From NCBI GenBank assembly GCA_937625935.1, contig OW569393.1, positions 248,001-312,000 on the forward strand: a DNA stretch of 64,000 nucleotides, given 5' to 3'. Under the pieces are notes generated by a model, which worked only from the letters and a program-made list of their open reading frames with translations, did not search any database and was not told where the DNA came from. The translations under genes were made by a program, and so were the position numbers. Position 1 is the first letter of the stretch. Every line of letters starts with the position of its first letter. Positions 1 through 29,240 of this stretch are shown piece by piece. Source of the DNA: Tetramitus jugosus. Lineage: Eukaryota; Protista; Heterolobosea.

Positions 1-444
1 TGGAAGATATTGAAGAAGCCAATGGAATCCAAGAGATTGTTGAAGCAATCAATGTGCTTGGTTTTGACTGGAAAGCAAGAAAATGAAAAGGGAATGAACA
101 AAGATTTATTGAAGAACTTCCTTTTGCCACCTATTGAATCCCATTTGAAGAAAATCATTGAAAAGGGGGCATTCAAAGATTTGTCAAATGAATTCACAAG
201 CAAATTGATCAAAAAATCTGCTGAGAATGCACTGTTTCTTGCTGCACAACTCGTTGTTTCGAAACCAACAATGGGAATTATTGCACCAAAGAAAGGCAGT
301 GACTTCAACCCAGACAAGCACGAAGATGCAACGTGTGAAACAAAAATGGTTGTGACATCAATCAAGAGACCTGGGTTGATTTGTGTGCGAGACAACAGAG
401 TATTTGCCAAAGCATCTGTTGAAACAGAAACCAAAAACGCTTAA
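1..444 (+). CDS. 3' part of coiled-coil protein with C-terminal GrpE-like domain (subfamily A); runs off the window start
   Basis: Frame is open from base 1. Near-identical to 26276-26719. C-terminus KGSDFNPDKHED...VTSIKRPGL...DNRVFAKASVET resembles the GrpE motif FDPxxHEA...V..V...GY...RvlRpAxV. Confidence 0.75.
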   Translation, partial: WKILKKPMESKRLLKQSMCLVLTGKQENEKGMNKDLLKNFLLPPIESHLKKIIEKGAFKDLSNEFTSKLIKKSAENALFLAAQLVVSKPTMGIIAPKKGSDFNPDKHEDATCETKMVVTSIKRPGLICVRDNRVFAKASVETETKNA

Positions 445-550
445 GGAGTGCCAATACACAAAGATTGGCGCTATTACCATCACTCACACATCAGTATCTA
501 CAGAAAAGAATGAATTAAGATGATTATGTCTAATATTTTTATTTGAAATT

Positions 551-2485
551 CTAATGATTCTTTTTGCTTGTTGTCTCAACAAGACATTTCTTTTGTACTC
601 TGTTGTCAACGACACAAATAAGACCTGGTCTCTTGACGAAAGTGACGACAAGCTCCGCTTCACATGTGGCATCTTCATGCTTTTCAGGATTAAATTGTTC
701 CTTGTTCACTCTTGGAGCAATGACATCCAGTCTTGGTTCACAAACAAGGAGTTCAGCAGCCAAATCAATTGATACACGAGCACATTCATCAATATTGTTC
801 TTGGTCTCATCATCATTCAAATCAACCAACTCTTTGAATTGAGACTTGATAATCTCACAAATGTTGTCATGAACAATACGATACAACTCCTTCTGTAATG
901 TATCTCTTTCATCCTTTGTTCCCTCCTTTCCAGTCAAAATCTTGGCTGTTTTCAATTCATTACACTTTGGTTTCTTCTTCTTGTGGATTGATCTCCAAAA
1001 TCCTTCTCCAAACAGAGATTCAACCAACTTTTGTTGACATTTTCTTTTGGCCTTCTTGAATTCTCCTTCATCTGATCCATTATTTTCAGACTTTTTTGAC
1101 ATACAGCTCAACAATTCACTCAATGTGTCCATAGCATCGTCAAATGTCTTTGAAGCTCCTGCAATTTTGATCGCACCTGTGTCTGCATTATTGGCCAAGG
1201 AACGATCATTTATGGCCTTTTCATTGATCAAGAGTTGCTTTCCATCAGCAATTTCTTGTTCTTTTTTCTTCATTAATTCGTTCAATACTTCGATTTGTTG
1301 CAAGTAATTTGTCTTTGACTCCTTCAATTCGTTTTCAATTTTGGTAATCTTTGATTTGAGTTCGGAAATAACATCCTTTTGATTGCTGATCTCATATTCC
1401 TTATGTTTCACTTCTTCTTTACCTGTCTTGACATCATTCTTGAGATGAAAGATATCATTCTTTTGCTTTGTAATCTCTTGATTCAATTTCACGATCAATT
1501 CGTTCAATACTTCGATTTGTTGCAGGTAGTTTGTCTTTGACTCCTTCAATTCGTTATCAATTTTGGTAATCTTTGAGTTGAGTTGGGAAATTATATCCTT
1601 TTGATTGCTGATCTCATATTCCTTACGTTTCACTTCTTCTTTACCTGTCTTGACTTCATTCTTGAGATGAAAGATATCATTCTTTTGCTTTGTAATCTCT
1701 TGATTCAATTTCTTCACTTCATCTTCCTTTGTCTTCAACTTTCTTTCAATTTCGTCCAGTGTTTTTTTGCATTCATCATCTTTCTTCTTCATATCAGATT
1801 GCTTTTTGATGGTATCTGTATGGTTACGAATCTCTGTATTCTTCTTTTCAATGGATTCTCTGAGCTCTTTCACTTGATTTTGCAATTGTTTGATTTTGAC
1901 ATCGACGCTCTTGAGTATGTTAACGAAATCAGGGTTAATTTGGCAGACCAACAATTTTTCTTCCAGAGATTCAGCTGTTTCAATCAACTCCTTGATTAGA
2001 AGATCTTTCTTGTTTATCTGGGTTTCAAGTGTTTCGACACTCTCTGAGAGTTTCTTGTTTTGGCCTTCTAGCTTGGCCTGCTTTGATGTTTGGATTGATA
2101 ATACAGTACGCAAACGGATACTTTCTTGTTGGGCTTGGCTTTTTTCCTTCTCCAGAATCATATTTTGGTCCCCTTGCTGGATCTTTTCTTTCTCAAGGTT
2201 TGACTTTTGGTTTGAAATTTTAAGCAGTTCCCTCTTTAGTTGAACGTTCTTTTCCTGGAGTTCCTTGTTTTCTTTTTCAATTTTTTTGTTTTCCTTCTCA
2301 AGTTGAGATTTTGATTCTTCTATTTGCTTGGCTAATTTATTTTTCTCTTCTGCAAGCTTCAAGTGAGCTTGTTGTAATAGATAGATTATATCTTCCGAAT
2401 TGTTGTCCATGGCTTGTGAATTGCGTTTTGTGCAGGATGTGTTTTGTGCAGGAAATTTTTTTACCAAATTATTGTTGGTTGGCAT
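551..2485 (-). CDS. 644-aa long coiled-coil protein with C-terminal GrpE-like domain (subfamily B)
   Basis: Intact ORF with a heptad-rich N-terminal two-thirds. C-terminus FNPEKHEDAT...VTFVKRPGLICVVDNRVQKKCLVET. Near-identical C-terminal halves at 18315-20408 and 27265-28230. Confidence 0.8.
   Translation of the reverse strand: MPTNNNLVKKFPAQNTSCTKRNSQAMDNNSEDIIYLLQQAHLKLAEEKNKLAKQIEESKSQLEKENKKIEKENKELQEKNVQLKRELLKISNQKSNLEKEKIQQGDQNMILEKEKSQAQQESIRLRTVLSIQTSKQAKLEGQNKKLSESVETLETQINKKDLLIKELIETAESLEEKLLVCQINPDFVNILKSVDVKIKQLQNQVKELRESIEKKNTEIRNHTDTIKKQSDMKKKDDECKKTLDEIERKLKTKEDEVKKLNQEITKQKNDIFHLKNEVKTGKEEVKRKEYEISNQKDIISQLNSKITKIDNELKESKTNYLQQIEVLNELIVKLNQEITKQKNDIFHLKNDVKTGKEEVKHKEYEISNQKDVISELKSKITKIENELKESKTNYLQQIEVLNELMKKKEQEIADGKQLLINEKAINDRSLANNADTGAIKIAGASKTFDDAMDTLSELLSCMSKKSENNGSDEGEFKKAKRKCQQKLVESLFGEGFWRSIHKKKKPKCNELKTAKILTGKEGTKDERDTLQKELYRIVHDNICEIIKSQFKELVDLNDDETKNNIDECARVSIDLAAELLVCEPRLDVIAPRVNKEQFNPEKHEDATCEAELVVTFVKRPGLICVVDNRVQKKCLVETTSKKNH
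1269..1712. repeat. In-frame tandem duplication, 2 x 222 bp (74 aa), inside the coiled coil
   Basis: aattcgttcaatac occurs at 1275 and 1497. Peptide KLNQEITKQKNDIFHLKN...LQQIEVLNEL occurs twice. Confidence 0.9.
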
Positions 2486-2599
2486 TTTGAAGTTTCAATG
2501 AACATTTTATTTTACAATAATTGTAATTTCATGAAATGCTGTTCCACAAATTCATTGAATTTCAATTTGGAACGATAACTCATAATCAACATAATACTC

Positions 2600-3110
2600 C
2601 GAAGTATATGTTTACGGCTCACGAGGGAAGATATTACTTGAGTACCAACAAGCACGCACCGTTAACCACAGCTTCTCCACTGAACTTTAGCATGATAAGT
2701 CTAAGACTTTAAGTGGGTGTTTCACATTCTTCTTTCAATCTCTTCCGAAGAACTTCACTTTGACCGAAGCCACCGACCAAGAAGATGAAATCAACTGATT
2801 TTCTTGTCCTTTAGTTTCAATTGTTCTTTCACTTGTGATACAATGGTATCTACTGGCTTTTGGAAGATTCCCTCGACATCTTTACCGGACAATTTCAATT
2901 TGAATGTATCTTGATCTTTAATTTTTGATTCAGTTACCTGTTTCGAAAGTAAAGGAGGAACGTTCAACTTGATACACACATCTTTGACATCTCTCTTTTG
3001 CTTCTCCCATGTTTGCCAACAACTCCAAGTAGAGGATCGGATTTTCCTTCTTAAATTTTTCAAACTTTGCTTGAGTGAAATCTTCAAAGAGAATGTCATC
3101 GTCCAATGCA
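2600..3110 (-). pseudogene. Decayed HSPA12-like Hsp70 (lobe II/C-terminal ATPase region)
   Basis: Manual translation across frameshifts gives LYLELL..WEKQKR, IFQKPVDTIVSQVKEQL, FIFLVGGFGQSEVLRKRL and SGEAVVNGACLL. These are collinear with FELLSNWESAK, IYMDIIEQICTLVADQI, YIFIVGGFGGSIVLQ and PGEAIVDGALYL of the intact gene. Confidence 0.8.
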
Positions 3111-3347
3111 GTTCATCAAACATCAGTTCGACAATAACTGCAAACTGAAGACTGTAACAATTCAAACCGTCAAATTTATGGAGAAATTGTTGGTTGATCG
3201 AGATTTTAGGATACTTCAATGAATATCTCGTCAAATGATAAACTCCGATGGATTTGAAGGATGACTTGTCAACCTTGACATCAACGAAGGAAAAAAAACT
3301 TTCACCTTCACAAAAAAATCAATAAAACACTCCTCAAATCAAAACAA

Positions 3348-5746
3348 ATGTCAATTCGTGACAAGACTGTTATAAACAAATCAATTGCAATTGCAGTGGA
3401 TTTCGGAACTTCAAGAACAGGTAGGCCTGACAATTATTTTTTTAATGACAGCAGGAACATTGACGTGACTCTTTTTTTTCAAACCTTTCAATCATTTCAG
3501 GTTATGCCTATGGATTTCCTGGAAGAGAAGAAAGCAACAAGGAAATGAACTGGGATGATGCTCCTGAAAGTTATTGCAAAACTTTAACAAAAATTGCGTA
3601 CAATGAAGATGATGAACCAGAATTTTGGGGCTTCACAGCTTGGAAAGAAATGTTAGATGACTGTGACGAAGATAGAGTTCTTCGTTTGTTTGAATTCTTC
3701 AAAATGGGCCTTTTCACTGATGATCATGTTGTGAGAGACACAACTGGTACAGTAGAAAAGGATGCTCTTGATGTAGTTGTTGACTATCTCAAGTTTCTTT
3801 TTGAAAAAATCAAAGAAGATTTGTCAAAGAGAGTTGGTAAAGACATCTCACCGGCTGAGATTGTTTGGTGTCTCACGATTCCTGCCATTTGGAAAGATGC
3901 TGAAAAATCGTTGATGCGTCAAGCTGCTTATAGAGCAGGCATGATTGAAGTTGAACATCCACCAGAGGATGTATTCATGTTGGTGTTGGAACCAGAAGCT
4001 GCTGCTGTTTTTTGTATGATGCAACTCAAGCGTCAAGGAAATCCACTCAGAGATGGAGACAAGTTCTTGGTGTTGGATGCAGGTGGTGGAACTGTCGATT
4101 TGACAGCTCATACATACAGCAAGGGTAAACTCAAGGAAATTACCACTGGTTCTGGAGGTCCTTGCGGTTCATCTGAGCTCGATAAGAAGTTTGAGAAGCT
4201 GATGTCGGAAATCTTTGGTGAAAAGGTGATGGATGACATGAGAAAGAAACATGCCGTTCAACACTTTGAATTACTCAGTAACTGGGAAAGTGCAAAGTGT
4301 AGAACGAAGGATCTAAATGATAGAACATTAGTTAAAGCACCTGGTGTGTTGAATGCCATTCTTCGTAGAGCAGAGTTCAGTAGTTCATGCTTTGATTCTG
4401 ATTCTAATACTATCATTTTGGATCCGAATCTATTGAACAAGATTTACATGGACATCATTGAACAAATTTGTACATTGGTTGCTGATCAGATTGATGCATG
4501 CAAATCAACAACTGGTTCTTCGTTTGATTACATTTTCATCGTGGGTGGATTTGGAGGCTCAATAGTATTGCAAGATATTGTCAAGAGTAGATTCGGTACT
4601 ATGATTAATAAGGGAATTGTTGTTCCTCCTGTACCTGGAGAGGCAATTGTTGATGGTGCTTTGTATCTTGGTCTTGATCCAAGTATTATTTCATCCAGAA
4701 GAATGAGAATGACTTATGGTTGTGCAGCAATGAAGGTCTTTGATCCAAATATTCATGATCCAAAGAAGAGAAAAGTCATTGGATCAACCACCTATTGTGT
4801 TGATATCTTTGATAAGTTTGTGACCAATGGAGAGGAAGTCGAGATTGATAAGGGTGTCACAAGTACGTATAAAGCGTCACTTGCTGATCAAAAGTCAATG
4901 GTCATTGCCGTTTATGGAACAAAGGTAACTAACATGAATTATATCGATGATCCTGCAAGTAACAAAATTGGAGAAATTATTATTGATATGAGCGATACAT
5001 CTGGTGGAATCAATAGATGTGTTGAAGTGACCATGTACTTTGGAAAATCTGAAATCCAATTACATGCTATTGAGAAGAACTCTGGAAAGGAATACAAAGC
5101 TGCCATCAAATTCCAAGGAGAGCTGTTTGAAACAGAACACACAACTACTCATCACCCTGAACATAAGTATCATATTATTTTTTCTAATGATAGATCTGGT
5201 TCAATGGGCTCCACTGATGTAGTCCCTTCTCTCAGTTTCCTTAAGAGTTCTCATAACAACCGCTTGGGAGCTCTGTATGAGGCATGTTCTTCCTTTTTGG
5301 ATCAAAGATCAGGTTCTCAAGATATAGTTTCTTGCATCATGTATGATGATAGCTCTAGTATTTGTTTCGAGAGACGGCCGTTATGTACAAGTTTAGTTAA
5401 AGACTACATGTTGAGGTACACAGCATCTGGTGGAACGTGTTTCTATTCTGCAATGAGTGCTGTTCAAGGTGTTGTTTCTCGAAATCCAAACGGATACACT
5501 CCCATTGTTATTTTTATGACTGATGGTGAGTGTTCAGATGAAGGTGCATCATCGACTCTTCGCAATATCGTGAGTTTATACTCTCACACTGGTTTTAAGC
5601 TTCACTCAGTTTTGGTTGGTCGTGGCAGTTACCATTCATTACTCCAGGAATTTGCTCGTATTGGAGGAGGTACTTTTTCTACTTCGGGCTTGAACTTGGC
5701 TGATATGAAGCAAACATACACCCAGTTGGCTGGGAGACTTGAATAA
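3348..5746 (+). CDS. HSPA12-like atypical Hsp70 fused to C-terminal VWA domain; exons 3348-3420 and 3501-5746 (772 aa)
   Basis: An 80-nt GT-AG intron joins AVDFGTSRT to GYAYG. Motifs WCLTIPAIW, LEPEAAA, DAGGGTVD, IVGGFG and SRRMRMTYG are typical of the HSPA12 type. VWA MIDAS DRSGS, GGT and IFMTDG are present. Confidence 0.9.
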
Positions 5747-8849: not shown

Positions 8850-10000
8850 ATATGAGGACGCAACCACCATTATTACTGACTACTCCCTTATAAGTTATCC
8901 ACAGAATGGTGTTTTGTATCAGTTAAATGTTTCTCAGGGACAAGAAGATGACCTATGGGATGCAGTTCAATTCTGCTACAAGAATTACAGCACTGACAAC
9001 AAATTCAAGTTCAGAGAACAAGTTTGGACCAAAAGGAGTGCTTCGTGTAATGGATGCAAGGCTTGTACACAAGAGGGTTGCGTATCTACAAAGCGTGTTG
9101 ACAGGAGAACGTGTGTTAATCATCCAAATATCACACTAGAACGTCAAGGAACGATTGTGGTCCAATTGTCCTGTGAAATTCTACTGGTTGTTTAACAAGA
9201 GCACCACACAGTACTTCATATCTGTGGGAGATCACAACCACCGTTGACGAAATTGCGAGCAACTGGTAGAACTTAACCTTTTTGAAAAAAACGAGAAGGA
9301 TTTTGAGAATGATGAATTTTCTGGTGTTCCCATCATTCAATTACTCTTCCCTTATCTACGAGTAGTTCATGTTGATGATTCAGGGGCGTTAGTGCATTCA
9401 CAGAACTTATTTCAATCTGTAATAGCATCCAAAGCCGAGTATTTGGTAGTTGATCTGAAGCATGGCAACAATGAAGAAGGTTTGCATCATTTTGGGATAG
9501 CCATAAAATCGATACCAAAAAGTCGACAATGGTGAGCAGAACTCGTATGGATAAGATGGATTCAACTTCATACATAATGGCATTTTTGTTCTTCTTCCAA
9601 ACTCTTGAAAGAGATTGTGAGCTGAGTCTCAGTACTTATCTCCAAGAGACAGGGTACTTGTTGATTACTAGATCAGTATTCTTGGAGCTATGTAGAGCAA
9701 TTCGAGAAGAGAGAGATCAGGAGGAAGTCATCAAAATGTTCTCCCACAGACAGTGCCTTGGGTGAATTGGTGGACCAGAGAACAAAATTTAAAATTGTTC
9801 CGCAGAGCATTCAAGGAAGGGGATGAATGGCATAAAATTCCAAACGATATAAATATTGTTGAAAGCTTGAACAACACTCTGCGAATTGTCTCCAGCAAAA
9901 ATATTGTAGTTCAGTTCAGTGCGGAGTATGCATTAGACTGTAGAGCCTGTGAAGAATGGCGATTAGGCTCTAGTGATATCTCACATTCCGCAACCAATCA
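8850..10000 (+). mobile_element. Degenerate MULE-like transposase with Cys/His-rich GCM-like N-terminus (copy 1)
   Basis: WDAVQF..QVWTKR..CNGCKACTQEGC, then WVNWWTRE and IPNDINIVESLNN. Homologous to 11943-15441. Many stops. Confidence 0.6.
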
Positions 10001-11800: not shown

Positions 11801-11942
11801 ATGATGCGGAACCAAGCAGAGCCTGGGTTCTATCATTTTTTGACCTTTGAAAGAGGTGAGGTACTCGAAGGACTTACCGGCTCAGTTCTTGAAGGTCTGG
11901 GGCGTCTTTTTCGGTTCTTTCGTGATATCAATGGTGTGACAT

Positions 11943-12917
11943 TCATATCAACACTTGCATGACGTGTGGTACTATTGCACCGATATCTTGATCTCTAGTA
12001 ACAACGAGCTGATCATCTTCGATATCACTTTTTTTGCTAATCTTTGTGACAGACTCAATGAATCTCTGAAGTCCCGATATATTCTCCTTGCAACGATTTA
12101 TGCCCAATTCAACAGTGTCTGGCGCCCTCCTGAAGGAGAGGTCGACGTTTGATAGAGCGCTTTTGAACTCCAGAAAGGCTCTTTCATCAATATCAAACAG
12201 TGTTGCACTGTTTACAACAACATTCTTGTTGTGTACCAGCTGCATAATGTTATGGAGTGATTCCACATTGTTTGCTGTATGCGGTATATCGCTCCAATGT
12301 TCCACTAAGCTGTACGCCTTGGTGAGTAAACGTAAGTTACAATCTCTTGTCCACCGGTCGACCCATGACCTTGCTCCTGGATATGTAATGTCTATAGCCT
12401 TGAAGATAGTAACGATTGACTCACAATCCTTGTCAAATGGAATGGTCTTACAGAAATTCACAAATCCCTCCTCCTTATCAGCAGAACAAATCAATTTTGC
12501 CAATTGCAAGACCGTACCCAATGTACGTGACAACCTTTGATCAACGATTCCGACAAGTTGTTGTCATCGAAAATCACAGCCAAAGCCAACTTGAGACCCT
12601 AGTACTGTGCTGTGGAGAAGTCAACCAAAATTCCAGCAACTTCATCAAACAATACATTTACATCGATCCCATCTTCCATCAAGGTGTTCAAAAATTGAAC
12701 AAATGCCATCCTATAACTATCCGCAGTTAAACTGTTCATCTGTACTCTGCACAGCATTACAGTTTTGTTCATTATCGGAACAAATCCACATATACCAAAA
12801 TGATGCCGAGCATTATCATGCTTCACATCAATAACAAGACAATCTACAAGGGGGACCAGAGAACTCTGAAAGAACGATTTTGTTTGGATCCAAGTATTTA
12901 AGTCCGTTACCAAGAAG
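11943..12917 (-). mobile_element. MULE-like transposase catalytic region (copy 2, 3' part), frameshifted
   Basis: Putative DDE: VIDVKH / ILVDFS / TANNVESLH. Interrupted upstream by the Ginger element. Confidence 0.65.
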
Positions 12918-12922
12918 TTTCT

Positions 12923-15105
12923 TGTCACGCCTTGAAATTTCAAGGCAAAGTAATGCCGCCAAAATTTTCAAGGCAAGCAAATCATCTTCAACGGTCAAAA
13001 AGTAAAACCGTTACAGAACATTTAAATCCACAACAAACAAAAGGATCAAACCCATGTCTAACACTATATCAACCAAGAAACAAGTAGTTGTAAGATACTT
13101 GGCAGACAAATCTGTCAACAAGTATTATCAGGCACTTGATAATTCTAATTTTACTGATTTGAGTAGGGACGAGCAAATACGCATCGAGAAAAGCATTCCT
13201 AGCAGCAATCACAAGAAGAAGGTGCGATTTGATGATGGTAAGCTTTACTACTCTGTGGCAATTCCCAAGATTATTCCCAAATTCAAGGCGGGAGTACCAG
13301 AGCATCAAAAGAATTCAGCAAGAGAAACTGCTACTTATGATGACTCTATTATCGAGTTACACAAGGAGGTTACTCACGAATGGCACTGGATTCCAAGAAT
13401 GAGTGAGAGGAATGATGTCTTGCGCGAGTTCCATGGATCTCATCATGTTGGAACCAAAAAAATGCAATCAGTGATGCACAGAGGCTTAACTGGATGGGCT
13501 AGAATGCAATCTGACGTAGAAAGGTTTTGTCGTACTTGTCCTCAGTGTCAGACGGTGAAATCTGATAAGAGTGTTGTTCTTTTGCAACCAGTTATTGCTG
13601 ATTACCCACTGCATCACTTATATATTGATATTACTTTCATGCAGAGAGAGAACGGCAAGATTGGTATGGTTTGTCTGATTGACCATCACACAAAACTATT
13701 GAAGAGCAGGTGTATCAGCAGCAAAAGAGCCGAAGTGGTTGTTGGCTTTTTAACAGAGGTGTTCGACTCATTTGGTATGTCTGAGCTCAAGGGGGATGAA
13801 AAACCAAAGTTCCAGATTTATTTGCGCTCAGACAATGGGAAAGAATTCGTTGCCAAATTGGTTGAGGATGTCTGCCAAAAGTACGGAGTCCTAAAAAAAG
13901 AAGGCCCAGCCTACAGTCCATGGGTGCAAGGTGTGGTTGAGAGAGTACAGAAAACCGTGAAAGATCGGATGAAAAATGCCGTTATTAACAATGACTCTGA
14001 CTGGGTGAAGGAGCATGACAACGCCATTGAATTATACAACAATACTGTTCATTCCACCACTGGTATGACTCCAAATGAAGCTTGGGCTCGTACATTCGTC
14101 CTGAATGAGATTACATTGAGTGAAGAGGCTGCCGCCATGAGATTGTACACAATCGGGGTAATCAAAAGTAAAACACTTGCCAGAGGTGAAGCAGATGCAG
14201 CCAGACGTGCCGGGAGAAAGAGGGTAAAGTTTCTTTCTAAAGATACCGTTGTTCTTGTGAGGGTGCCAATGAAGTACAGAGCCAACAAGCGTCTTGTGTG
14301 GGGCAAAAAGGCTAAACTAGTTGAGCAGAGAACGGCTGGTAACAAGAGAGTCTCATCATGGAAAGTAGAATGGCTTGAAACAGGTGGAATCAAGTCATGC
14401 GAGAGAACTGGTGACGTGACGCCGTACTGGCTTCAAGCTCAACACCTGAAAGTTTTCCAGTTCGGTTTTGACAAATATCTGGACAGTAGAAATACTGAAC
14501 CTGTCACTACTGACAATCTACAGTTGCAAGCAGCGAGAATGTCTTGGCAGCCAAAGTACACTGAAGCTGACAAGGAGGGTGAGAATGATGACCCAATTGC
14601 AGACCAACATAAAGAGGTTGAACAGACTCCATCTTCCCCAACTATAGGCCCAAGTCCACCTGCTACTCCAGAACAATTTTCGCACAATATACAAGATGAT
14701 GACCCAAGTGAACCTTTTTCTGCTCTAGAACCAGCACCGACCACAGATGACCCAAGGCCAGAACAGACGCCAGAACCGTCTCCAACTGTCGATCCACCAG
14801 ACACCACTCAAGCTATCCAGGAACCACTGACGACAGTCATCATCAGTAGAAAAAACAGACTGTCAAGGAGACGAAGGAGGGCAGAGTCTGATGCAGAAGA
14901 ACCTCGCAACAAAAAGAAGCGTGACAATTGAATTCCATTTTTCCGGTTTACATCTGTTTTTTTTTGAGTTTTAGAAGTGTTTATTGAGTTGACCTCATAT
15001 TCTTGTTGAATGTTCACAGAATTTACAATAATCAAATTCCAAGGCATTTTGTAATCCTTCAATGTTTCGATGAAATTTCGCTGCCTTGAATTTCAAGGCG
15101 TGACA
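12923..15105 (+). mobile_element. Apparently intact Ginger2/TDD-type DNA transposon, 2183 bp
   Basis: TIRs TGTCACGCCTTGAAATTTCAAGGCA (12923-12947) and TGCCTTGAATTTCAAGGCGTGACA (15082-15105). 5-bp TSD TTTCT at 12918-12922 and 15106-15110. Single integrase ORF, no RT, gag or LTR. Confidence 0.92.
13054..14931 (+). CDS. Gypsy-like (rve) integrase/transposase of the Ginger element, 625 aa
   Basis: HHCC finger (FHGSHHVG...CRTCPQC), DDE triad (YIDITF, RSDNGKEF, GVVER), Pro/acidic tail and basic NLS-like end. Confidence 0.92.
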   Translation: MSNTISTKKQVVVRYLADKSVNKYYQALDNSNFTDLSRDEQIRIEKSIPSSNHKKKVRFDDGKLYYSVAIPKIIPKFKAGVPEHQKNSARETATYDDSIIELHKEVTHEWHWIPRMSERNDVLREFHGSHHVGTKKMQSVMHRGLTGWARMQSDVERFCRTCPQCQTVKSDKSVVLLQPVIADYPLHHLYIDITFMQRENGKIGMVCLIDHHTKLLKSRCISSKRAEVVVGFLTEVFDSFGMSELKGDEKPKFQIYLRSDNGKEFVAKLVEDVCQKYGVLKKEGPAYSPWVQGVVERVQKTVKDRMKNAVINNDSDWVKEHDNAIELYNNTVHSTTGMTPNEAWARTFVLNEITLSEEAAAMRLYTIGVIKSKTLARGEADAARRAGRKRVKFLSKDTVVLVRVPMKYRANKRLVWGKKAKLVEQRTAGNKRVSSWKVEWLETGGIKSCERTGDVTPYWLQAQHLKVFQFGFDKYLDSRNTEPVTTDNLQLQAARMSWQPKYTEADKEGENDDPIADQHKEVEQTPSSPTIGPSPPATPEQFSHNIQDDDPSEPFSALEPAPTTDDPRPEQTPEPSPTVDPPDTTQAIQEPLTTVIISRKNRLSRRRRRAESDAEEPRNKKKRDN

Positions 15106-15110
15106 TTTCT

Positions 15111-15599: not shown

Positions 15600-17153
15600 T
15601 TGTGAGACAATGTATTAATTCAACGAGCGTTCAATACAAGTTCCCAGACGTATGTCGTTTTTCCACATTGTTTTCGTCAAACCAGGATTCTGACTAGAGA
15701 AACATGTGTTCATTGCACCACCAGCTTCCATAACTCTGGAGACCTTCATCAATCAACGTCAGAGCCTGGAGCACCTTCTTGATATCGTCAGTACTATCAG
15801 CATCTTCAAATTTCTAAATAAATCGTATAGTGGTGATGCTATCCATTTATGATGGAAATGTCTGATTCATCGGCGTCCACACCATCTAAGTATGCTTTCA
15901 TTCGTTCAAACCCAAGATCTTGGTTGAATGTCTCAAACAAAGTGTTAAAAGCTTTGACATAATCTTCAGATCCATCCCCGCCCTGTAAGTCTGGGAGATC
16001 TGTAATGCATGATTATATTTTTCGAGATATGTAGAGGCACCTAGAATGTGGTACTTAGGCCCTTCTTAGATTTGGCCTTCAAATCTAGTACCAGTTTATC
16101 CGATGTCAAAGCAAGTTTGCTTTGCATTGTGTGTGTAGAAACATATGATCTGGAGTAGCATGCAATTGTCTCACGAATGGTGCAACTACATCATGGATAG
16201 ATTCTGAATTCAGGTGACAAAGAGTTGAAATCTTGCTTGTTGAGATGTTTAATATATCTGTCTTCTATGTCATATGCTAAGAATAGTGCATTATCTCCAG
16301 TGATAGATCAAATGATTGCTCTCGCGTTACCTTCTTCTTCAGACTAGCTAGCGTATTGATATTGATGAATAGAGGGTTAGTGGTGAATGGAAGGATTCCA
16401 GATTTACCACCTTTGAGTACATCCTTTGGAGTCTGTTGAACATCTGAACGAAACTCATTGAGGATTGGTTCCTTGTCCTGTTCAGATGCTTTCCAGGGTT
16501 TTGGATCAGAGTGGTTGTGGGCAGTATGGGAGCGTCCAGATATTATATTCACCTCTGACCCCCTCCCTGCCTGTTTTGAATAAATTTGAATAACACATTT
16601 TCCTGTAAATTCGAACGTTACATTAATTCTCCTACTAGGATTGGGATCAAGAGACCCCCTTTGAATAAAATATTGAATAAATTTCTCAGACCCCCTCCCT
16701 AGGGGGTGCGTAAGAAAAAATATCTGGACGCTCCCTATGCACATAATAGAATACTTGATTCGTGTCACTGCATCGTCTATAGTATGTTCTTGCTGGACAA
16801 TCTATGACTTCCAAATTTGTGTTGTGATGAGGGCACTTGGTTGTCTTCTTTTTACGAACAGCGATAACGGTGGAAAGACTTGTAACTATGCTCTTGTTCG
16901 TATTGACACTGATCTGATCAACGTGCTTGCTTTTGATCACACCACCACATTTAAAACTTTCAATAATCCATTCTTTGCCCCAGATAATTCTACAATTTTT
17001 GTGCTGACTTTCTTTATCTTCATATCTATAACAAACACCACTCTGCGGAAACATGACAGCACTTTCCGCATTCTTAGGTGTCATTAATTGCAAGTACTTC
17101 AATGACAACATTTGGTTGATTTTGGTTCCTCTTCCTGTCCATAGTGTGTGCAA
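15600..17153 (-). mobile_element. Degenerate MULE-like transposase (copy 3) carrying a MITE
   Basis: GKEW....KCGGV...CPHH..L..IDCPA...YYVH/TAHNH zinc-binding GCM/WRKY-like domain. Downstream relics DKLVLDLK, EDYVKAFNTLF and YGSWWCNE. Confidence 0.6.
16528..16735. mobile_element. 208-bp MITE, 17-bp TIR, 3-bp TSD (PIF/Harbinger-like ends)
   Basis: GGGAGCGTCCAGATATT...AATATCTGGACGCTCCC, flanked by TAT on both sides. Removing it rejoins YYVH-TAHNH in frame. Confidence 0.88.
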
Positions 17154-17399
17154 TGTTTGGATTGTTTTGTTGTTTTGTTTCAGACACCGTGGTTGACTCT
17201 CTGTTTCAACAAATAATTCAATCTACTGGTTGATGGTTACTATGTCTTGGTGAAAAGCATGTCCATGTCAAATGTCTCGACAAAAACATATGTCTTTATA
17301 TGTCTATGTTTTCCGCTTATGTCTCAAACTCCCAAAATGTCCATGTGGTTGTATGTTACTCTTCACCAAGACACAAGCTACAGTCCAAATTTTATTTTG

Positions 17400-17800
17400 G
17401 TATTGTCGCCCATGGATGTTGTTCCATCGAAGAAGAGAGTCCTTGTGCAGTTTTCCATAATTTGATCGTGTTTTCTATTTAGCTCCTAGCTCGTTCGTTC
17501 TGGATAAAATTCTTAATGCGTTTGTTGATGTCAATTCCGTCGCATTAGAGTGTTCAAAAACTGAATGAACGCGTATAAATTGTTATCATGCTTTATATCG
17601 ATTACCAAGCAATCCACCAGTGATATTAAGTAGCTATGGAAGAAATACTGAGTTTGGACCCATGTGTTGGTATAATCTGTAACCACAAATATCTGAAGGA
17701 ATGAAAATAACTAGTAGGAAACAGTCATGCTCTTGATTTGTTGTTTATCATCATCATAATTCTTTTTGCCCAAGTTTTCCTTCAGCCATCCGCTGGGGAA
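17400..17800 (-). mobile_element. Internally deleted MULE-like relic (copy 4)
   Basis: Minus strand reads LVDCLVIDIKHDN and AFIQFLNTLM, nearly identical to copy 2 peptides but with the intervening segment deleted. Confidence 0.6.
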
Positions 17801-17823
17801 TAACCAGAGGTCCACCATATACT

Positions 17824-17888
17824 ATTTAAATTTATTCAAAACAGGCAGGGAGGGGGTCAGAGGTGAATATAATATCTGGACGCTCCCC
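17824..17888 (-). repeat. Solo inverted copy of the MITE left end (about 62 bp)
   Basis: Reverse complement matches 16528-16592 almost exactly. Confidence 0.85.
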
Positions 17889-18314: not shown

Positions 18315-20408
18315 TTATTTTCTGAGTGCGGAGGAGCAAAAAGTCTGTTCATTATCTTCGGTCTTTTTGATTGTTGTCTCAACAAGACATTTCTTTTGAA
18401 CTCTGTTGTCAACGACACAAATAAGACCTGGTCTTTTGACAAAAGTGACAATAAATTCTGCATCACATGTGGCATCTTCATGCTTTTCAGGATTAAATTG
18501 TTCCTTGTTCACTCTTGGAGCAATGACATCCAGTCTTGGTTCACAAACAAGGAGTTCAGCAGCCAAATCAATTGATACACGAGCACATTCATCAATATTT
18601 TTCTTGGTCTCATCATCATTCAAATCAACCAACTCTTTGAATTGAGACTTGATAATCTCACAAATATTGTCATGAACAATACGATACAACTCCTTCTGTA
18701 ATGTATCTCTTTCATCCTTTGTTCCCTCCTTTCCAGTCAAAATCTTGGCTGTTTTCAATTCATTACACTTTGGTTTCTTCTTCTTGTGGATTGATCTCCA
18801 AAATCCTTCTCCAAACAGAGATTCAACCAACTTTTGTTGACATTTTCTTTTGGCCTTCTTGAATTCTCCTTCATCTGATCCACTCTTATCAGACTTATAT
18901 GACATACAACTCAACAATTCACTCAATGTGTCCGTAGCATCGTCAAATGTCTTTGAAGCTCCTGCAATTTTGATCGCACCTGTGTCTGCATTATTGGCCA
19001 AGGAACTATCATTTCTGGCCTTTTCATTGATCAAGAGTTGTTTTCCATCAGCAATTTCTTGTTCTTTTTTCACGATCAATTCGTTCAATACTTCGATTTG
19101 TTGCAGGTAGTTTGTCTTTGACTCCTTCAATTCGTTATCAATTTTGGTAATCTTTGAGTTGAGTTGGGAAATTATATCCTTTTGATTGCTGATCTCATAT
19201 TCCTTACGTTTCACTTCTTCTTTACCTGTCTTGACTTCATTCTTGAGATGAAAGATATCATTCTTTTGCTTTGTAATCTCTTGATTCAATTTCTTCACTT
19301 CATCTTCCTTGGTCTTCAACTTTCTTTCAATTTCGTCCAGTTTTTTTTTGCATTCATCATCTTTCTTCTTCATATCCGATTGATGCTTTTTGATGGTATC
19401 TGTATGGTTACGGATCTCTGTATTCTTCTTTTCAATGGATTCTCTGAGCTCTTTCACTTGATTTTGCAATTGTTTGATTTTGTCATCGAGACCGCTCTTG
19501 AGTATGTTAACGAAATCAGGATTAATTTGGCAGACCAACAATTTTTCTTCCAAAGATTCAGCTGTTTCAGTCAATTCCTTGATTAGAAGATCTTTCTTGT
19601 CTATCTGCTTCTCAAGTGTTTGGACACTCTCTGAGAGTTTCTTGTTGTGCTCTTCTAGCTTGGCCTGCTTTGATGTTTGCATTGATAATTCTCTACGCAA
19701 ACGGGTACATTCTTGTTGCGCTTGGCTTTTTTCCTTCTCCAGAATCATGTTTTGGTCCCCTTGCTGGATCTTTTCTTTCTCAAGGTTTGACTTTTGGTTT
19801 GAAATTTTAAGCAGTTGGGTTTCAAGTGTTTCGACACTCTCTGAGAGTTTCTTGTTTTGGTCTTCTAGCTTGGCCTGCATTGATGTTTGCATTGATAATT
19901 CACTACGCAAACGGGCACATTCTTGTTGGGCTTGGCTTTTTTCGCTCTCCAGAATTATGTTGTTTTCTTGCAGAAGCTTCTGATTTTCAGTCATAGTTTG
20001 TAAAGATTCTTGGAATGGTTGGTTTCCTTCGAATCCTTGAACGTTCCACTGGGGTTGGAAAGAGGGATTGGGTGATCCATAATTATTTGCTCCAGTTTGA
20101 GTTTGATGATGATTTGGATAAGTCTGAGGGTTTGTATTTTGTGAAAAATGACCTTGTTGATAACTCACATTCATGTTCTGAACAGGTGATGAGACATGTT
20201 GGAGTTGTTGCTGGCTCGTCATCGGAAACGCGGATACAAAAGGATTGGGTGTTCCATAATTATTGGCTCCACTTTGAGGTTGATGATGATCCAGATAAGG
20301 CTGAGGGTTTTGTGAACAATTGCTTTGTTGATAATTCACATTCTGAAGAGGTGGTGAGACCTGTTGGTTACTTCTGAAGTTACTTGCGACTGGATTTTGA
20401 CTGTGCAT
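18315..20408 (-). CDS. 697-aa coiled-coil/GrpE-like protein (subfamily B) with Q/N/P-rich repeated N-terminus
   Basis: Intact ORF, near-identical to 551-2485 over the C-terminal part. Has its own 210-bp offset duplication (19624 vs 19834) and a duplicated QQ..P.QN..YQQ...GANNYG.PNP unit. Confidence 0.8.
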   Translation of the reverse strand: MHSQNPVASNFRSNQQVSPPLQNVNYQQSNCSQNPQPYLDHHQPQSGANNYGTPNPFVSAFPMTSQQQLQHVSSPVQNMNVSYQQGHFSQNTNPQTYPNHHQTQTGANNYGSPNPSFQPQWNVQGFEGNQPFQESLQTMTENQKLLQENNIILESEKSQAQQECARLRSELSMQTSMQAKLEDQNKKLSESVETLETQLLKISNQKSNLEKEKIQQGDQNMILEKEKSQAQQECTRLRRELSMQTSKQAKLEEHNKKLSESVQTLEKQIDKKDLLIKELTETAESLEEKLLVCQINPDFVNILKSGLDDKIKQLQNQVKELRESIEKKNTEIRNHTDTIKKHQSDMKKKDDECKKKLDEIERKLKTKEDEVKKLNQEITKQKNDIFHLKNEVKTGKEEVKRKEYEISNQKDIISQLNSKITKIDNELKESKTNYLQQIEVLNELIVKKEQEIADGKQLLINEKARNDSSLANNADTGAIKIAGASKTFDDATDTLSELLSCMSYKSDKSGSDEGEFKKAKRKCQQKLVESLFGEGFWRSIHKKKKPKCNELKTAKILTGKEGTKDERDTLQKELYRIVHDNICEIIKSQFKELVDLNDDETKKNIDECARVSIDLAAELLVCEPRLDVIAPRVNKEQFNPEKHEDATCDAEFIVTFVKRPGLICVVDNRVQKKCLVETTIKKTEDNEQTFCSSALRK

Positions 20409-22999: not shown

Positions 23000-23500
23000 A
23001 TAATCAACGTATGAGTGCTACCTGCGTCGCTCATAACACTCATCCTGAACTCTCACTTTCCTTGTCCGGGAAATCAGACATACCATATCTCGTTGACTGC
23101 AACTTCTTCTTCATCTTTTCCTGACTGACCTGCAATTCTGGATCAATCCTATTTGTAGTAACTTGGGTTTTTGGTTTGGGCTAGTTCCAAAATTTTCCAA
23201 CATGGTCTTCCTTCGAAATACTTCTGGGCAATAACGATCCAACTGTTGCGATCTACTTAGTAGTTGTTCCAATATTCGATTGACTTTGAATTGAGATCCT
23301 CTGTAGCGAGAAATGAGGTGACACAAGGAAACTGTGTGCATGATACATTTCCGTGTGGCATTGGAAATAGTCCAGAAGTTCAATTTGTGTGAGAATCAAA
23401 GACTCTCATATTCTCAACGAGACAAGACGATTTGCAAGTTGGAAACATTGGAATTTATCGATATGGCGATCGCGGACATAGTACATCTTTCCTAACAATT
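23000..23500 (-). mobile_element. Highly decayed LINE reverse transcriptase relic
   Basis: PYR*IPMFPTCK resembles the YRPIsllp..xK motif, followed by RKCIMHTVSLCHLI and MLENFG. Weak. Confidence 0.35.
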
Positions 23501-25010
23501 GATTCATAGAGTGCGGGAGAGCTGGATAGGATTTGAAGAAGTGTCTGTGCAGACATATTCGCTAGTTGATTCATCAGTTGGTACAATCTCTTCATCATTC
23601 TCAGGTTCGATTGTGTAGCGGTATGTTCGGTCAATATTCGTATCGACGCAAACGATATGTTTTACTTAGGCACCCATGCATGAGTTGTCGCGTGAGAGAA
23701 TGAAGGCGAGAGACTCGAGTACTCAATTCCAGTACGAGCATTCATTCAAGATGGGTGGCATTGGATTCCTAGAATTGAAGAGAGAGTATCAATCATGAAG
23801 TAAATCCAGTAGATGTATCATCATCCAGAAGTCAACAATATGATGATATTTTTATGGCTAAATCAACAACAATCGATCAAAACATTTATCAAAGAATTCT
23901 TGCATTGTGTACAAAACAAAGGGTGTACCTAATTTTCCGTATCGTGTCCCTATATGTATTTCAACACGTTTATGTGGAACATTCAATGATCACGATGAAA
24001 TTGGGTTGTTAAGGAACTTTACGATAAATACGGGGTAGTAAAGAAAGGGGGAAGAAAGACCATAGATCCAAGGTGTTCACGAGAATTATCGAACAACAAG
24101 CGGTTATGTGTTGGGTAGAAGAGCCGTAAGCGATGTGGAGCAACTGATTGATGAACAACGAACCGCTCAATTCCCAGTGTTTTACTCATCATGGTGTTGA
24201 CCATCATTTTGTTGTGCATTTTGCGGCTCATTCTTGTCATTTTCTTGTTTATCATTCTGCTGCTAACTCTGTTTTTCTGCTGTCAATGAAATATGATTGT
24301 CCCAGGCAGCTCTCCTCGTTCTATCAACCTTCTTACTTTAATTGGAAAGAAGAAAAATAGGAAGTCATGTCACACCTTTTTAGACTCAAGTTCAGGACTC
24401 TGAGTTGTTGGATTACCCACATATCATCCAGGAGTAGTACAAAGAGGACATAACGATTAAGAGATATTGTACTGAAATTTCGAATCTGACGTGATCTAAG
24501 AACAAGAGAAAAGCTTTCAAAGAAGAGAATTTTCAGTTGTGTCGATCGAAGGGGATGAAGAATAAGCAACTGAATTGTAACATTTAAGACAAAACCTTTT
24601 CAACAAGGTAATTCAAAAAAGTAACACTATACCTCACTTCTCTGAACATTCTGTTGTTCATTTCGACGAATTCTTCTTCTTTTTCGGCATCTTCTCACCA
24701 TTTCTTAACATGATTGCATCTCATTCTGCATCTCATTTAATTTGTTGCAGGTGCTCTGTCTCTTCATCTTGTTGTTGCTCAATCTGCTATCCTTTTTGTG
24801 CCTCAATCCGCTGAGATTGTTGTTGTTCATTATGCAGTTCCTTCTGCAGATCATTTCGTTGCCCAGCTCAATTCTTTCTGATCGTTAGCATCTTCTACGT
24901 CGTTTGTCACACAGGGACAATCGCCAGAGCAACGAACAAAAACATCAGCGAATTGTTGGATTCAAAAGCACCAGATTTTTGTAGAATAGGATGAACCTGT
25001 AGTTCTTGCG

Positions 25011-25125
25011 CAAATTTCTTCAATAATATCCACCTTCTTCAAGTAATTTGACTTCTAAATAATAGTAATAGTATTTGAATCAGAATCAAAGCATGAACTG
25101 CTGAAACTGCTCGACGAAGAATGGC
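25011..25125 (-). pseudogene. Short DNA-level relic of the Hsp70-VWA gene
   Basis: Reverse complement gccattcttcgtcgagcag-tttcagcagttcatgctttgattctgattcaaatact...ggatattattgaagaaatttg aligns to 4355-4470. Confidence 0.8.
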
Positions 25126-25378: not shown

Positions 25379-26719
25379 ATGGGTAACTTTTTTTCTCAAA
25401 GTGAAGATGCAGTGACCAATTTCAATGATTTTGAAACTCTTCTCGACCAGCTTGGTGAAAAAAATTCCACTTCTTGCAGAGTTGATAGGACTCTCCTTCA
25501 AAATCTAATCAACAGATATTTGAATGAAAAGGTAGCCATCCAACAAAACTGCTTTCAAAAAATCAGAGAATTTGAATCAAAGATTAAACAACAGGAGGGT
25601 ACAAATTTACAAATTCAACAATTAATGAATGAAAAGTCACAAGCTAATCAACTCTTGGCGAACGCCAAGACCCAATTCCAAGAGATGATGAATGACAAAA
25701 ACACTTTGTTGAAGGAGATTACGAAAGTAAGTAATGAGAAAGACTTTTATAGGAGAGAGAGTGATGAAAGACAACAAAAATTGAACCAAGCAGAGAAAAA
25801 ATTGGAATCCATCAAACTCCAACATGAAGTAGATAAACAGAAAATTCAAGATTTTTTGAAACAGAAACAAGAATTTTGTGATAACTTGACAAGAGAAAAG
25901 AACCAACTGCATGAACAGAATGAATATCTCATTCAATCATTGCAAAATTCCAACCGTGCAAAAGAAACACTCTCCAATGAATGTGAAAAATTGAGTGAGA
26001 CTGTTGGGGAGCTGAAGAAAACAATTGCTGACAAGAGTCAAGAGTTGATTGGTGTCATGGCTGACATGGACAGTTCCATCTTTTCAAGCAGTGACAGTGA
26101 TGATGGCAAGATTAGACCTCAAATTGTTCACAAGCAATTCGACACATTGATGGACATTATTCATGAACTTCAATTGGATATCAAGTCGAATTGTGATTCT
26201 AGTACTGAAGACTATAGTAAACGAATGAGCAATGTTTACAAGAAAATTCTTGAATCATTGTTTGATCCTGGATTGTGGAAGATATTGAAGAAGCCAATGG
26301 AATCCAAGAGATTGTTGAAGCAATCAATGTGCTTGGTTTTGACTGGAAAACAAGAAAATGAGAAGGGAATGAACAAAGAATTATTGAAGAACTTCCTTTT
26401 GCCACCTATTGAATCCCATCTGAAGAAAGTCATTGAAAAGGAAGTAGGCCAAGATTTGTCAAACGAATCCACAAGCAAGTTGATCAAAAAATCTGCTGAG
26501 AATGCACTGTTTCTTGCTGCACAACTCGTTGTTTCGAAACCAACAATGGGAATTATTGCACCAAAGAAAGGCAGTGACTTCAACCCAGACAAGCACGAAG
26601 ATGCAACGTGTGAAACAAAGATGGTTGTGACATCAATCAAGAGACCTGGGTTGATTTGTGTGAGAGACAACAGAGTATTTGCCAAAGCATCTGTTGAAAC
26701 AGAAACCAAAGATGCTTGA
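25379..26719 (+). CDS. 446-aa coiled-coil/GrpE-like protein (subfamily A), candidate N-myristoylation
   Basis: Intact ORF beginning MGNFFS (MGxxxS). Coiled coil, then the same C-terminal domain as 1-444. Confidence 0.8.
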   Translation: MGNFFSQSEDAVTNFNDFETLLDQLGEKNSTSCRVDRTLLQNLINRYLNEKVAIQQNCFQKIREFESKIKQQEGTNLQIQQLMNEKSQANQLLANAKTQFQEMMNDKNTLLKEITKVSNEKDFYRRESDERQQKLNQAEKKLESIKLQHEVDKQKIQDFLKQKQEFCDNLTREKNQLHEQNEYLIQSLQNSNRAKETLSNECEKLSETVGELKKTIADKSQELIGVMADMDSSIFSSSDSDDGKIRPQIVHKQFDTLMDIIHELQLDIKSNCDSSTEDYSKRMSNVYKKILESLFDPGLWKILKKPMESKRLLKQSMCLVLTGKQENEKGMNKELLKNFLLPPIESHLKKVIEKEVGQDLSNESTSKLIKKSAENALFLAAQLVVSKPTMGIIAPKKGSDFNPDKHEDATCETKMVVTSIKRPGLICVRDNRVFAKASVETETKDA

Positions 26720-27264: not shown

Positions 27265-28230
27265 ATGATTTTGGGATTGTTTTCAAATAGAGAATATGAC
27301 AAACTGAAAGAACGTTATCACCAACTGGAGACTACCATCAACATTGTTCAAGAAAAGAATACTAAATTGAACAGTGAATACCAAGAAGAAAAAAAACGAA
27401 GAAAAGAAGATATTTCCCAACTCGAGTCAAAGATTACCAAAATTGATAACGAATTGAAGGAGTCAAAGACAAATTACTTGCAACAAATCCAAGTATTGAA
27501 CGAATTGATCAAGAAAAAAGAACAAGAAATTGCTGATGGAAAACAACTCTTGATCAATGAAAAGACCAGAAATGATAGTTCCTTGGCCAATAATGCAGAC
27601 ACAGGTGCGATCAAAATTGCAGGAGCTTCAAAGACATTTGACGATGCTATGGACACATTGAGTGAATTGTTGAGCTGTATGTCATTTAAGTCTGATAATA
27701 GTGGATCAGATGAAGGAGAATTCAAGAAGGCCAAAAGAAAATGTCAACAAAAGTTGGTTGAATCTCTGTTTGGAGAAGGATTTTGGAAATCAATCCACAA
27801 GAAGAAGAAACCAAAGTGTAATGAACTGAAAACAGCCAAGATTTTGACTGGAAAGGAGGGAACAAAGGATGAAAGAGATACATTACAGAAGGAGTTGTAT
27901 CGTATTGTTCATGACAATATTTGTGAGATTATCAAGTCTCAATTCAAAGAGTTGGTAGATTTGAATGATGATGAGATCAAGAAGAATATTGATGAATGTG
28001 CTCGTGTATCTGTTCATTTGGCTGCTGAACTCCTTGTTTGTGAACCAAGACTGGATGTCATTGCTCCAAGAGTGAACAAGGAACAATTTAATCCTGAAAA
28101 GCATGAAGATGCCACATGTGATACAGAATTTGTTGTCACTTTTGTCAAGAGACCAGGTCTTATTTGTGTCGTTGACAACAGAGTTCAAAAGAAATGTCTT
28201 GTTGAGACAACAATCAAAAAGAATGATTAG
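27265..28230 (+). CDS. 321-aa short coiled-coil/GrpE-like protein (subfamily B)
   Basis: Intact ORF with a unique N-terminal ~48 aa, then near identity to 551-2485 from DISQLESKITK onward. Confidence 0.8.
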   Translation: MILGLFSNREYDKLKERYHQLETTINIVQEKNTKLNSEYQEEKKRRKEDISQLESKITKIDNELKESKTNYLQQIQVLNELIKKKEQEIADGKQLLINEKTRNDSSLANNADTGAIKIAGASKTFDDAMDTLSELLSCMSFKSDNSGSDEGEFKKAKRKCQQKLVESLFGEGFWKSIHKKKKPKCNELKTAKILTGKEGTKDERDTLQKELYRIVHDNICEIIKSQFKELVDLNDDEIKKNIDECARVSVHLAAELLVCEPRLDVIAPRVNKEQFNPEKHEDATCDTEFVVTFVKRPGLICVVDNRVQKKCLVETTIKKND

Positions 28231-28329
28231 AAGAATAAAAACGACCTCTCTAAAATTCGGTGACAATACTCAAACATGGAATTGATTCCACTAAACTCCC
28301 ATGTTTTCCAACTCCACTACACTGGAAGA

Positions 28330-29240
28330 CCATCTTGAAGCCCCACAGGCTCTCGTCACCACAAACTGGCCCGCTCAAAGAATACCGTTTAAAAAAAATT
28401 AGCACCACGAAATGAAAAAGTAACTTCAGAATTCAATGAAGTCACAATATCAATTTACTTACATAGTTGCCCCAATCAATTTTCATCTCGAGTTGAGATA
28501 CAACACGAGTGGCAACATCTTGAAGCGTGACAAATGAAACTTGACCTTCTGTTCCTTTATGGATTACAGTCTTTGTTCCAATTGTTCGTTTGTTTTCAAC
28601 AAAGATGCCAGGACTCCTTGACAGTATGGGAAGATCTCGGTCAACCCAGAACCTTGCGTTTGTTCTTCGAGTAGATCTGAAAAAACAAATAATTTTATAG
28701 TGTTCAAATCTACTTCGCACTTCAATTATACTTGCTAATCTCGTCGTTAAATGCCGTTATGAAATTGTTACCTCTTCAAATCGCGTCATCAAATTCTTGG
28801 TGAAGTTCGAATCATTCCCTGAGTAGATGGTGGAAACAACAGGTGGTAGTCGTTGCACTTCAGATATCCAAGCCAAACTAATGGCATCTCTTATTGGATA
28901 GTTGATCAACCTATTCTGAAGTCACCTATTTCGAAAAGATATTCACTCAAGAGCGAAATCCAATTAAGGCACACAGTTTTTCGACGAAATATTTAGATTC
29001 TATCGCTGTTTCGAGCTCACTGATAATATGTTACTCCTCCTCTGGTTCAGAAACAATTACAGACAATGTAGGTATACATGCTGATATTCCTAACTTCCCT
29101 GTAATTAGGCCATCTCCAATGCTCCAAACTATGGAATGGTGAAGCATACTAGTACAATTTAATCCTCCTTGTAACTTCGTTTTAAGTAGAAAAAACCTTT
29201 ACTGAAAACGTCAGTAAAGTACTGTAACGATATCCAGTTT
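28330..29240 (-). pseudogene. Heavily decayed HSPA12-like Hsp70
   Basis: LQYFTDVFSKGFFYLKRSYKED*IVLVCFTIP/VWS...IVSEPE parallels DYLKFLFEKIKEDL...IVWCLTIPAIW...LVLEPE. Downstream GIFVENKRTI and EVTFSF weakly match the C-terminal beta region. Confidence 0.5.

Follow-up and report, generated by a model that had tools for sequence, protein, structure and literature searches.

The window analyzed here (the whole 64,000-nucleotide stretch, positions 248001-312000 of the Tetramitus jugosus contig that we label C50, within a 26.35-Mb genome) contains genes encoding long coiled-coil proteins with a GrpE-like C-terminal head, interleaved with genes and gene remnants of HSPA12-like Hsp70s, which raises the question of whether the two families form a functional unit and what such a unit might do. 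A first-pass annotation of this DNA had proposed a dedicated non-organellar pair of Hsp70 and nucleotide-exchange factor, possibly acting in defence or self/non-self recognition. Our analysis revealed that two anciently split HSPA12-type Hsp70s are encoded beside two to four proteins composed of a stalk, a helical bundle, and a beta-head; beyond what had been annotated, the module comprises two distinct Hsp70 types, and the window holds a rearranged, partly decayed copy of it. We interpret this non-organellar Hsp70/GrpE-superfamily module, with a probability of roughly 0.55, as a nucleotide-gated recognition switch, most likely serving defence or self/non-self discrimination.

Organization of the module in the window and the genome

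The five coiled-coil genes were borne out at their annotated positions, and sequence identities supported their division into two subfamilies: members of subfamily A (A1, A2, and A3) share 92-94% identity across the C-terminal 270 amino acids and those of subfamily B (B1 and B2) share 95%, against approximately 36-38% between A and B. The C-terminal motif described for these genes is present in all five; the window paralogues have their heads in common and unrelated N-termini. The module features in the window are the following.

1..444, + strand: GrpE-like partner B1, 3' part; 389 amino acids, N-terminus Met-Gly; the open reading frame (ORF) starts 725 bases upstream of the window (contig position 247275) and ends at 444
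551..2485, - strand: GrpE-like partner A1; 644 amino acids; a coiled coil containing a 222-bp internal duplication, followed by a helical domain and the beta-head
2645..3116, - strand: type II HSPA12-like Hsp70 relic; frameshifted middle piece
3164..3347, no strand: intergenic region, 97% identical to the spacer that separates the divergently transcribed type II and type I genes in the upstream copy
3348..5746, + strand: intact type I HSPA12-like Hsp70 with a VWA domain bearing a metal ion-dependent adhesion site (MIDAS); intron 3421-3500; VWA top-face loops diversify
18315..20408, - strand: GrpE-like partner A2; 697 amino acids; Gln/Asn/Pro-rich N-terminal extension of about 135 amino acids
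24986..25125, - strand: short type I Hsp70 relic, head-to-head with B2
25379..26719, + strand: GrpE-like partner B2; 446 amino acids; N-terminus matches MGxxxS; C-terminal 247 amino acids modelled with high confidence (see below)
27265..28230, + strand: GrpE-like partner A3; 321 amino acids; shortest stalk

The single intact Hsp70-VWA gene had been recognized correctly; its start, however, lies at 3348 instead of 3545, and an 80-nucleotide GT..AG intron at 3421-3500 was spliced in two RNA runs (the spliced model was searched exon by exon). At least three Hsp70 relics had been claimed, of which two stood (2645-3116 and 24986-25125), with z scores of 134 and 16 in frameshift-tolerant alignment. 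The third, at 28330-29240, produced no match with nhmmer or hmmsearch and a z of 1.1, within the genomic background; a further candidate near 22250 was also rejected. The type II relic is 90% identical to an intact type II gene at contig positions 232323-234089, 14 kb upstream of the window, and the region 3164-3347 probably represents a bidirectional promoter.

Profile searches confined both families to the same three loci of the 26-Mb genome and found neither family elsewhere in it. The first, on contig C30 (442017-451124), is an intact 9-kb unit flanked by ordinary housekeeping genes, in the order of two partners, then divergently oriented genes for a type I Hsp70-VWA and for a type II Hsp70, and finally two more partners. 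The second, on C50, begins with a type II/type I pair that is still intact and lies 14 kb ahead of the window; the window itself contains a type I copy with 97.7% identity to the type I gene of that pair, the wreck of a type II gene, and five partners amid transposon remains, which confirmed the transposon-rich setting described earlier. The third, on C52, retains two adjacent relics, one from each family. In total, and as lower bounds, these searches counted nine intact partners and one relic along with five intact Hsp70s and relics. The two intact clusters differ in their flanking genes, and two of the three loci exhibit birth-and-death turnover. A genome-wide family search for GrpE matched only the canonical mitochondrial GrpE, which is encoded separately on C6. 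Transcripts of the module occur in RNA libraries from soil and from the laboratory, and an oligo-dT library has type I, type II, and one A partner among its transcript contigs; these may derive from paralogues or another strain.

A probable GrpE-superfamily partner for an HSPA12-type Hsp70

In profile-profile comparisons (hhalign), the amoeba heads matched those of GrpE with a probability of 94% and E values of 1e-7 to 2e-7; the score of 41 compares with a maximum of 16 over 60 column shuffles, and reversed controls were also negative. The match was unchanged with canonical GrpEs only, reached 97% with a combined profile, and was obtained by the actinobacterial heads on their own (E 7e-6), in support of the homology to the GrpE beta-domain that had been suggested. 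An AlphaFold model of the last 247 residues of B2 (predicted local distance difference test, pLDDT, of 91) displayed the order of coil, helices, and beta structure, and the only PDB rows spanning this whole model were GrpE chains (VIA Z 5.4-6.3). In the predicted-structure atlas, GIL1_IRKI_C (template modelling score, TM, 0.59) and MIEAP (0.53/0.61) were recovered along with GrpE (0.40-0.45), the GIL1_IRKI_C and MIEAP matches spanning 176-192 residues of the helical domain and beta-head and being matches between predicted models. The actinobacterial partner model returned the same nearest set (GIL1_IRKI_C, MIEAP, then GrpE). The kinship with MIEAP and GIL1/IRKI proposed in the first-pass annotation was hence upheld; the fold appears to be an elaborated MIEAP/GIL1-like version and not that of a canonical GrpE. 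By sequence and model comparison, the partners are a divergent, MIEAP/GIL1-like family of the GrpE superfamily and not canonical GrpE.

The Hsp70 is of the HSPA12 type, as had been claimed, by full-length homology and by its tree position: its full-length relatives are annotated HSPA12A/B, with E values down to 1e-125 versus 1e-15 for DnaK, and it falls in the same broad clade, in which the amoeba genes form a clade of their own. It is devoid of the alpha-helical lid, and the best PDB matches of its profile are DnaK and mortalin. The nucleotide-binding motifs (DnaK D8, E171, D194, T199, E267, and K270) are conserved in register with 1dkg, and an invariant lysine probably corresponds to DnaK K70. 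Type I often carries the VWA domain, whose MIDAS (DxSxS...T...D) is intact.

Several results count against the proposed Hsp70/GrpE-superfamily module. Single sequences did not reach the Pfam cut-offs for GrpE (PF01025; best E 0.008, over the helical part) or MIEAP (PF16026; best E 0.004-0.07) and did not match GIL1_IRKI_C (PF24994), and single-sequence and hidden Markov model searches for GrpE in Pfam and PDB yielded nothing significant. The structural Z to GrpE is middling, Foldseek returned nothing significant for the 247-residue model, and the isolated 88-residue head gave a poor model with no match in either structure search. The R-x-A-x-V motif of the last strands occurs in 8/8 canonical GrpEs versus 2/33 family heads, in 30 of which K/R-A-x-V replaces it. 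On the Hsp70 side, the positions of DnaK K55 and E264, which we take to latch the nucleotide cleft, are not kept; exchange control may therefore differ from that of DnaK, and classical exchange would perhaps be less needed.

Some of these features would also suit partners that act as scaffolds or membrane adaptors in the manner of MIEAP and IRKI, binding and positioning the Hsp70s without catalysing exchange. The fold nearer to MIEAP/GIL1_IRKI_C than to GrpE, the extra helices, the shifted arginine motif, and the partial loss of the latch residues all point in this direction, as do the N-termini: Met-Gly starts were found in 8/29 family members versus 4/61 background ORFs, and MGxxxS fits in 5/29 versus 1/61, family members not being independent in the Met-Gly count. 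The Met-Gly partners are predicted to be myristoylated. In a composition check only, no window partner had a basic, acid-free presequence (net charge -5 to +3, with B types starting Met-Gly), compared with six K/R and no D/E in the first 30 amino acids of the mitochondrial GrpE. However, the most conserved region of the partners is the beta-head, which in GrpE contacts the Hsp70 nucleotide-binding domain. We consider a purely scaffolding role improbable; it overlaps with the switch interpretation and differs from it in the biochemical step alone.

Linkage in other amoebae and in bacteria

The linkage of the two families, for which a genome-wide check had been suggested, holds at all loci found here as well as in other amoebae and in bacteria. 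Naegleria fowleri has a single block comprising two Hsp70 genes and three partner genes, Acrasis kona has two genes of each family, and metagenomic contigs of the close family have an adjacent Hsp70 wherever they are long enough to tell. Synteny with the N. fowleri flanks was not found; the gene content of the present genome and the relatives recovered suit a Naegleria-like heterolobosean of the soil other than N. fowleri. A quick tree places the amoeba Hsp70s in a single clade that divides into two sister groups, types I and II (support 99), each with members from N. fowleri, Acrasis, and this genome; the pair therefore predates their split. Among bacteria (GTDB), a head-bearing gene lies directly downstream and on the same strand at 21/29 HSPA12-like loci (17 of the pairs in Actinomycetota, two in Cyanobacteria, and two in Planctomycetota), with the reservation that these loci are interrelated and most were included in the final profile. 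The two planctomycete partners were found by an amoeba-only profile (E 3e-9 and 8e-8), and a held-out partner gene of the cyanobacterial type scored E 8e-10. A canonical grpE is kept elsewhere in all five bacteria checked.

These data bear on the simplest account of the locus, in which unrelated neighbours were copied together by transposon-driven segmental duplication. The transposon-rich window and the 92-98% identity of the copies are compatible with it, and a neighbour of this kind is missing beside some HSPA12 genes of eukaryotes: those of a chytrid and of Kipferlia showed no adjacent partner in an exon-wise search that could miss split heads, by which we rejected a universal eukaryotic linkage. 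Heads without an Hsp70 on two contigs (L041 and L042) likewise detract from a strict linkage. Nevertheless, the linkage was kept from Acrasis to Naegleria in differing orientations and flanks, and the same-strand adjacent pair recurs in Actinomycetota, Cyanobacteria, and Planctomycetota. Because of this cross-domain gene order, neutral co-duplication is largely refuted and has very little left to recommend it.

Further observations concern the composition of these loci. The Acrasis type I Hsp70 (L040:6543-9083) bears a different C-terminal domain of about 270 amino acids without a Pfam match; the appended domain is therefore swappable. VWA, JAB-ThiF, CHAT protease, and AAA genes lie beside some bacterial loci, including a stand-alone VWA gene (L053:5305-5910) before one cyanobacterial Hsp70 and ThiF, TPR-CHAT, DUF1822, radical SAM, and AAA genes around the pair at L093. 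Downstream of the actinobacterial Hsp70/partner pair at L054, L058, and L071 lies a gene that by eye is E2-like, accompanied at L054 by a JAB-ThiF fusion, and these downstream genes may constitute a bacterial ubiquitin-like system. A helical protein of 400-500 amino acids recurs upstream of the bacterial Hsp70 (L048, L054, L057, L058, L060, L061, L066, L069, L071, and L072); it had no Pfam family in the case tested (L048) and is likely a third component. On L041 and L042, contigs rich in F-box-LRR or FNIP genes and possibly of giant-virus origin, the GrpE-like heads include three in tandem in a 970-amino-acid protein; IMG/VR scans for either family gave no match.

Constant cores and diversifying faces

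The two type I copies (97.7% identical) differ by 2 amino acid and 16 silent changes across the ATPase and beta domain, compared with approximately 22 amino acid and 7 silent changes across the linker and VWA, corresponding to ratios of nonsynonymous to synonymous substitution rates (dN/dS) of 0.05 for the ATPase versus 0.95 for linker plus VWA (Fisher p 2e-5). Thirteen of the 15 changed VWA residues lie in the MIDAS-site loops, which make up 20% of the domain (p 6e-8), a value tempered by the delimitation of these loops after the alignment was viewed. A second pattern emerged at C30, where three other assemblies (two from the Joint Genome Institute, JGI, and one from Logan) are mostly 98-99% identical to this genome over the neighbouring genes; over the promoter and stalk of one partner they fall to 52-82% and return to 98% over the head. 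The synonymous divergence (dS) of the allelic stalks is 1.3-1.5 versus 0.023-0.029 in the head and neighbours. The alternative stalk allele is not present elsewhere in this genome, and a paralogue in it as the source was discarded. Taken together, purifying selection acts on the head and the ATPase, and diversification affects the stalks and the ligand face of the VWA.

A chaperone specialised for proteostasis or stress, with its own exchange factor for particular clients or membranes and no conflict role, would explain the linkage and homology equally well, and would attribute the variability to relaxed constraint on coiled coils and a duplicated VWA. Transcription in soil and laboratory libraries, the lack of an effector domain, and the response of bivalve HSPA12 subsets to heat and metals (PMC11268181) agree with it. 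Relaxed constraint, however, would not gather 13/15 changes on a single VWA face where synonymous changes are nearly absent, nor would it maintain two alleles whose depth exceeds that of the adjoining genes about 50-fold beside a homogenised head; the turnover at two of three loci also speaks against it. We therefore regard a pure proteostasis role as rather unlikely. Given the few haplotypes, introgression or relaxed selection may still have contributed to the stalk and VWA pattern.

A putative recognition switch

The combination of a constant core, variable specificity parts, deep alleles, and gene turnover would fit defence or self/non-self loci, and the deep, diversifying alleles, drawn from few haplotypes, are of the kind by which an allorecognition or defence locus may be recognized. 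The self/non-self idea of the first-pass annotation thereby gains support from VWA-face diversification and deep stalk alleles, at the level of sequence. In the switch that we propose, the partners would dimerise through the coiled coil, probably A with B; the conserved head would dock on the Hsp70 nucleotide-binding domain and control ADP release or localisation; and the B partners bearing Met-Gly would anchor the complex at a membrane. What is recognised would depend on the variable stalk and the MIDAS face, and recognition would flip the Hsp70s into a client-binding or assembling state. The parts of this scheme differ in strength: physical partnership between Hsp70 and partners is probable, true exchange-factor activity is somewhat favoured, and a conflict or recognition role is credible to a similar degree. 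Two negative results speak against the latter, namely that the amoeba module contained no toxic effector domain and that the PADLOC 2023 profiles of anti-phage systems returned only coiled-coil noise.

Other features of the window

Between and after the module genes lie elements that form its context.

13054..14931, + strand: integrase (H2C2 zinc finger plus rve) transposon ORF, intact, in a transposon-rich spacer; outside the module
16528..17887, no strand: element with 65-bp inverted ends

A decayed relative of the integrase ORF lies near 23100-23800. A 208-bp end of the second element occurs at at least 40 genomic places, many near contig ends, and with ends this common genome-wide a role of the element as module mobiliser was unsupported. 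Two decayed copies of a transposase-like family, in opposite orientation (8900-10400 and 11900-15300), also occur near the C52 relic; the family has no Pfam match and is, by motif, presumably Mutator-like. Directly after the cluster, 29404-30942 encodes a TRIM-like protein (RING, B-box, coiled coil) with six DUF4116 repeats, possibly an immune-type neighbour. A tRNA-Val(AAC) at 32600-32673 overlaps the upstream extension of an oxidoreductase ORF, which because of this overlap starts later. Two paralogous TPR proteins (47011-48771 and 53850-55628) each stand beside a cyclase-like receptor gene (43261-46938 and 51436-53616). Finally, a 1000-amino-acid ORF at 56878-59880, with a weak match to a TET-associated glycosyltransferase (E 3e-5), is preceded by a GTPase-like fragment (55870-56837), the two being possibly one spliced gene.

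Relation to known systems

Like DnaK-GrpE and the mitochondrial Hsp70-GrpEL/Mge1, the module pairs an Hsp70 ATPase with a partner of coiled coil, helical part, and homologous beta-head, gene-linked in bacteria. It differs in that the Hsp70 is of the HSPA12 type, without an alpha-helical lid and with a different C-terminal domain and an optional VWA; in having two Hsp70 types, two to four partners, an enlarged helical region, and no linked J protein seen; and in that a canonical GrpE is retained as a gene of its own, both here and in the five bacteria checked. With HSPA12A/B, found in animals and expanded in bivalves, the Hsp70s share full-length homology and the broad clade, whereas the amoeba genes branch separately within it and are encoded as a pair. 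MIEAP/SPATA18 (PF16026) and plant GIL1/IRKI (PF24994, DUF641) are the nearest structural families for both the amoeba and the actinobacterial partner, yet the partners fall below Pfam cut-offs and MIEAP, GIL1, and IRKI are not known as Hsp70-linked. The allorecognition loci het/vic of fungi and tgrB1/tgrC1 of Dictyostelium consist of paired, linked genes whose specificity parts are deeply polymorphic between alleles. The present locus resembles them in its linked genes and in the deep alleles of a putative specificity part, and has no sequence relationship to them.

The nearest precedent, with a different core, is the GAP1-N2 DO-GTPase systems, predicted conflict loci of multicellular bacteria with HSP70, GrpE, and VWA genes and sometimes a second Hsp70 (PMC7159879). 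Their core consists of a double GTPase together with GAP1 and proteins of the FNIII-DnaJ type (Kaur et al. 2020, PMC7159879), none of which occurred among the ORFs at the three loci of this genome or at those of N. fowleri and Acrasis (the bacterial loci were unscreened); Naegleria is not mentioned in that paper. A 2026 review describes HSPA12 function as unknown and no dedicated cytosolic GrpE as retained in eukaryotes (PMC13580251). In bivalve expansions, an Hsp70 orthogroup counts 68 versus 4 genes per species and Mieap 53 versus 0.6, with no biochemical link drawn (PMC8382680), and the oyster Hsp70 expansion is mainly HSPA12 (PMC11268181). Our literature search, outside which most subscription papers lay, found no paper joining HSPA12 with GrpE, MIEAP, or GIL1 and none tying MIEAP or GIL1/IRKI to GrpE. 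The Hsp70-GrpE-like pairing is apparently undescribed; it is a real, conserved variation on the Hsp70-GrpE theme, and its sequences provide evidence that it acts in recognition.

As a tentative extension, which we put forward as possible, HSPA12-type Hsp70s and MIEAP/GIL1/GrpE-like proteins would form one ancient chaperone-cofactor system of filamentous bacteria and eukaryotes, turned in heterolobosean amoebae into a polymorphic self/non-self or anti-pathogen switch, and human HSPA12A/B and SPATA18/MIEAP, like the expanded bivalve families, would be cognate partners. With this gene pair, HSPA12 gains a candidate cofactor family, and the relatives of GrpE come to include MIEAP and plant GIL1/IRKI. 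For biochemistry, the bacterial versions are small, with two genes each, and the amoeba genes have almost no introns. We know of no recognition or immunity locus in heterolobosean amoebae, for which the allele pattern described here provides a candidate.

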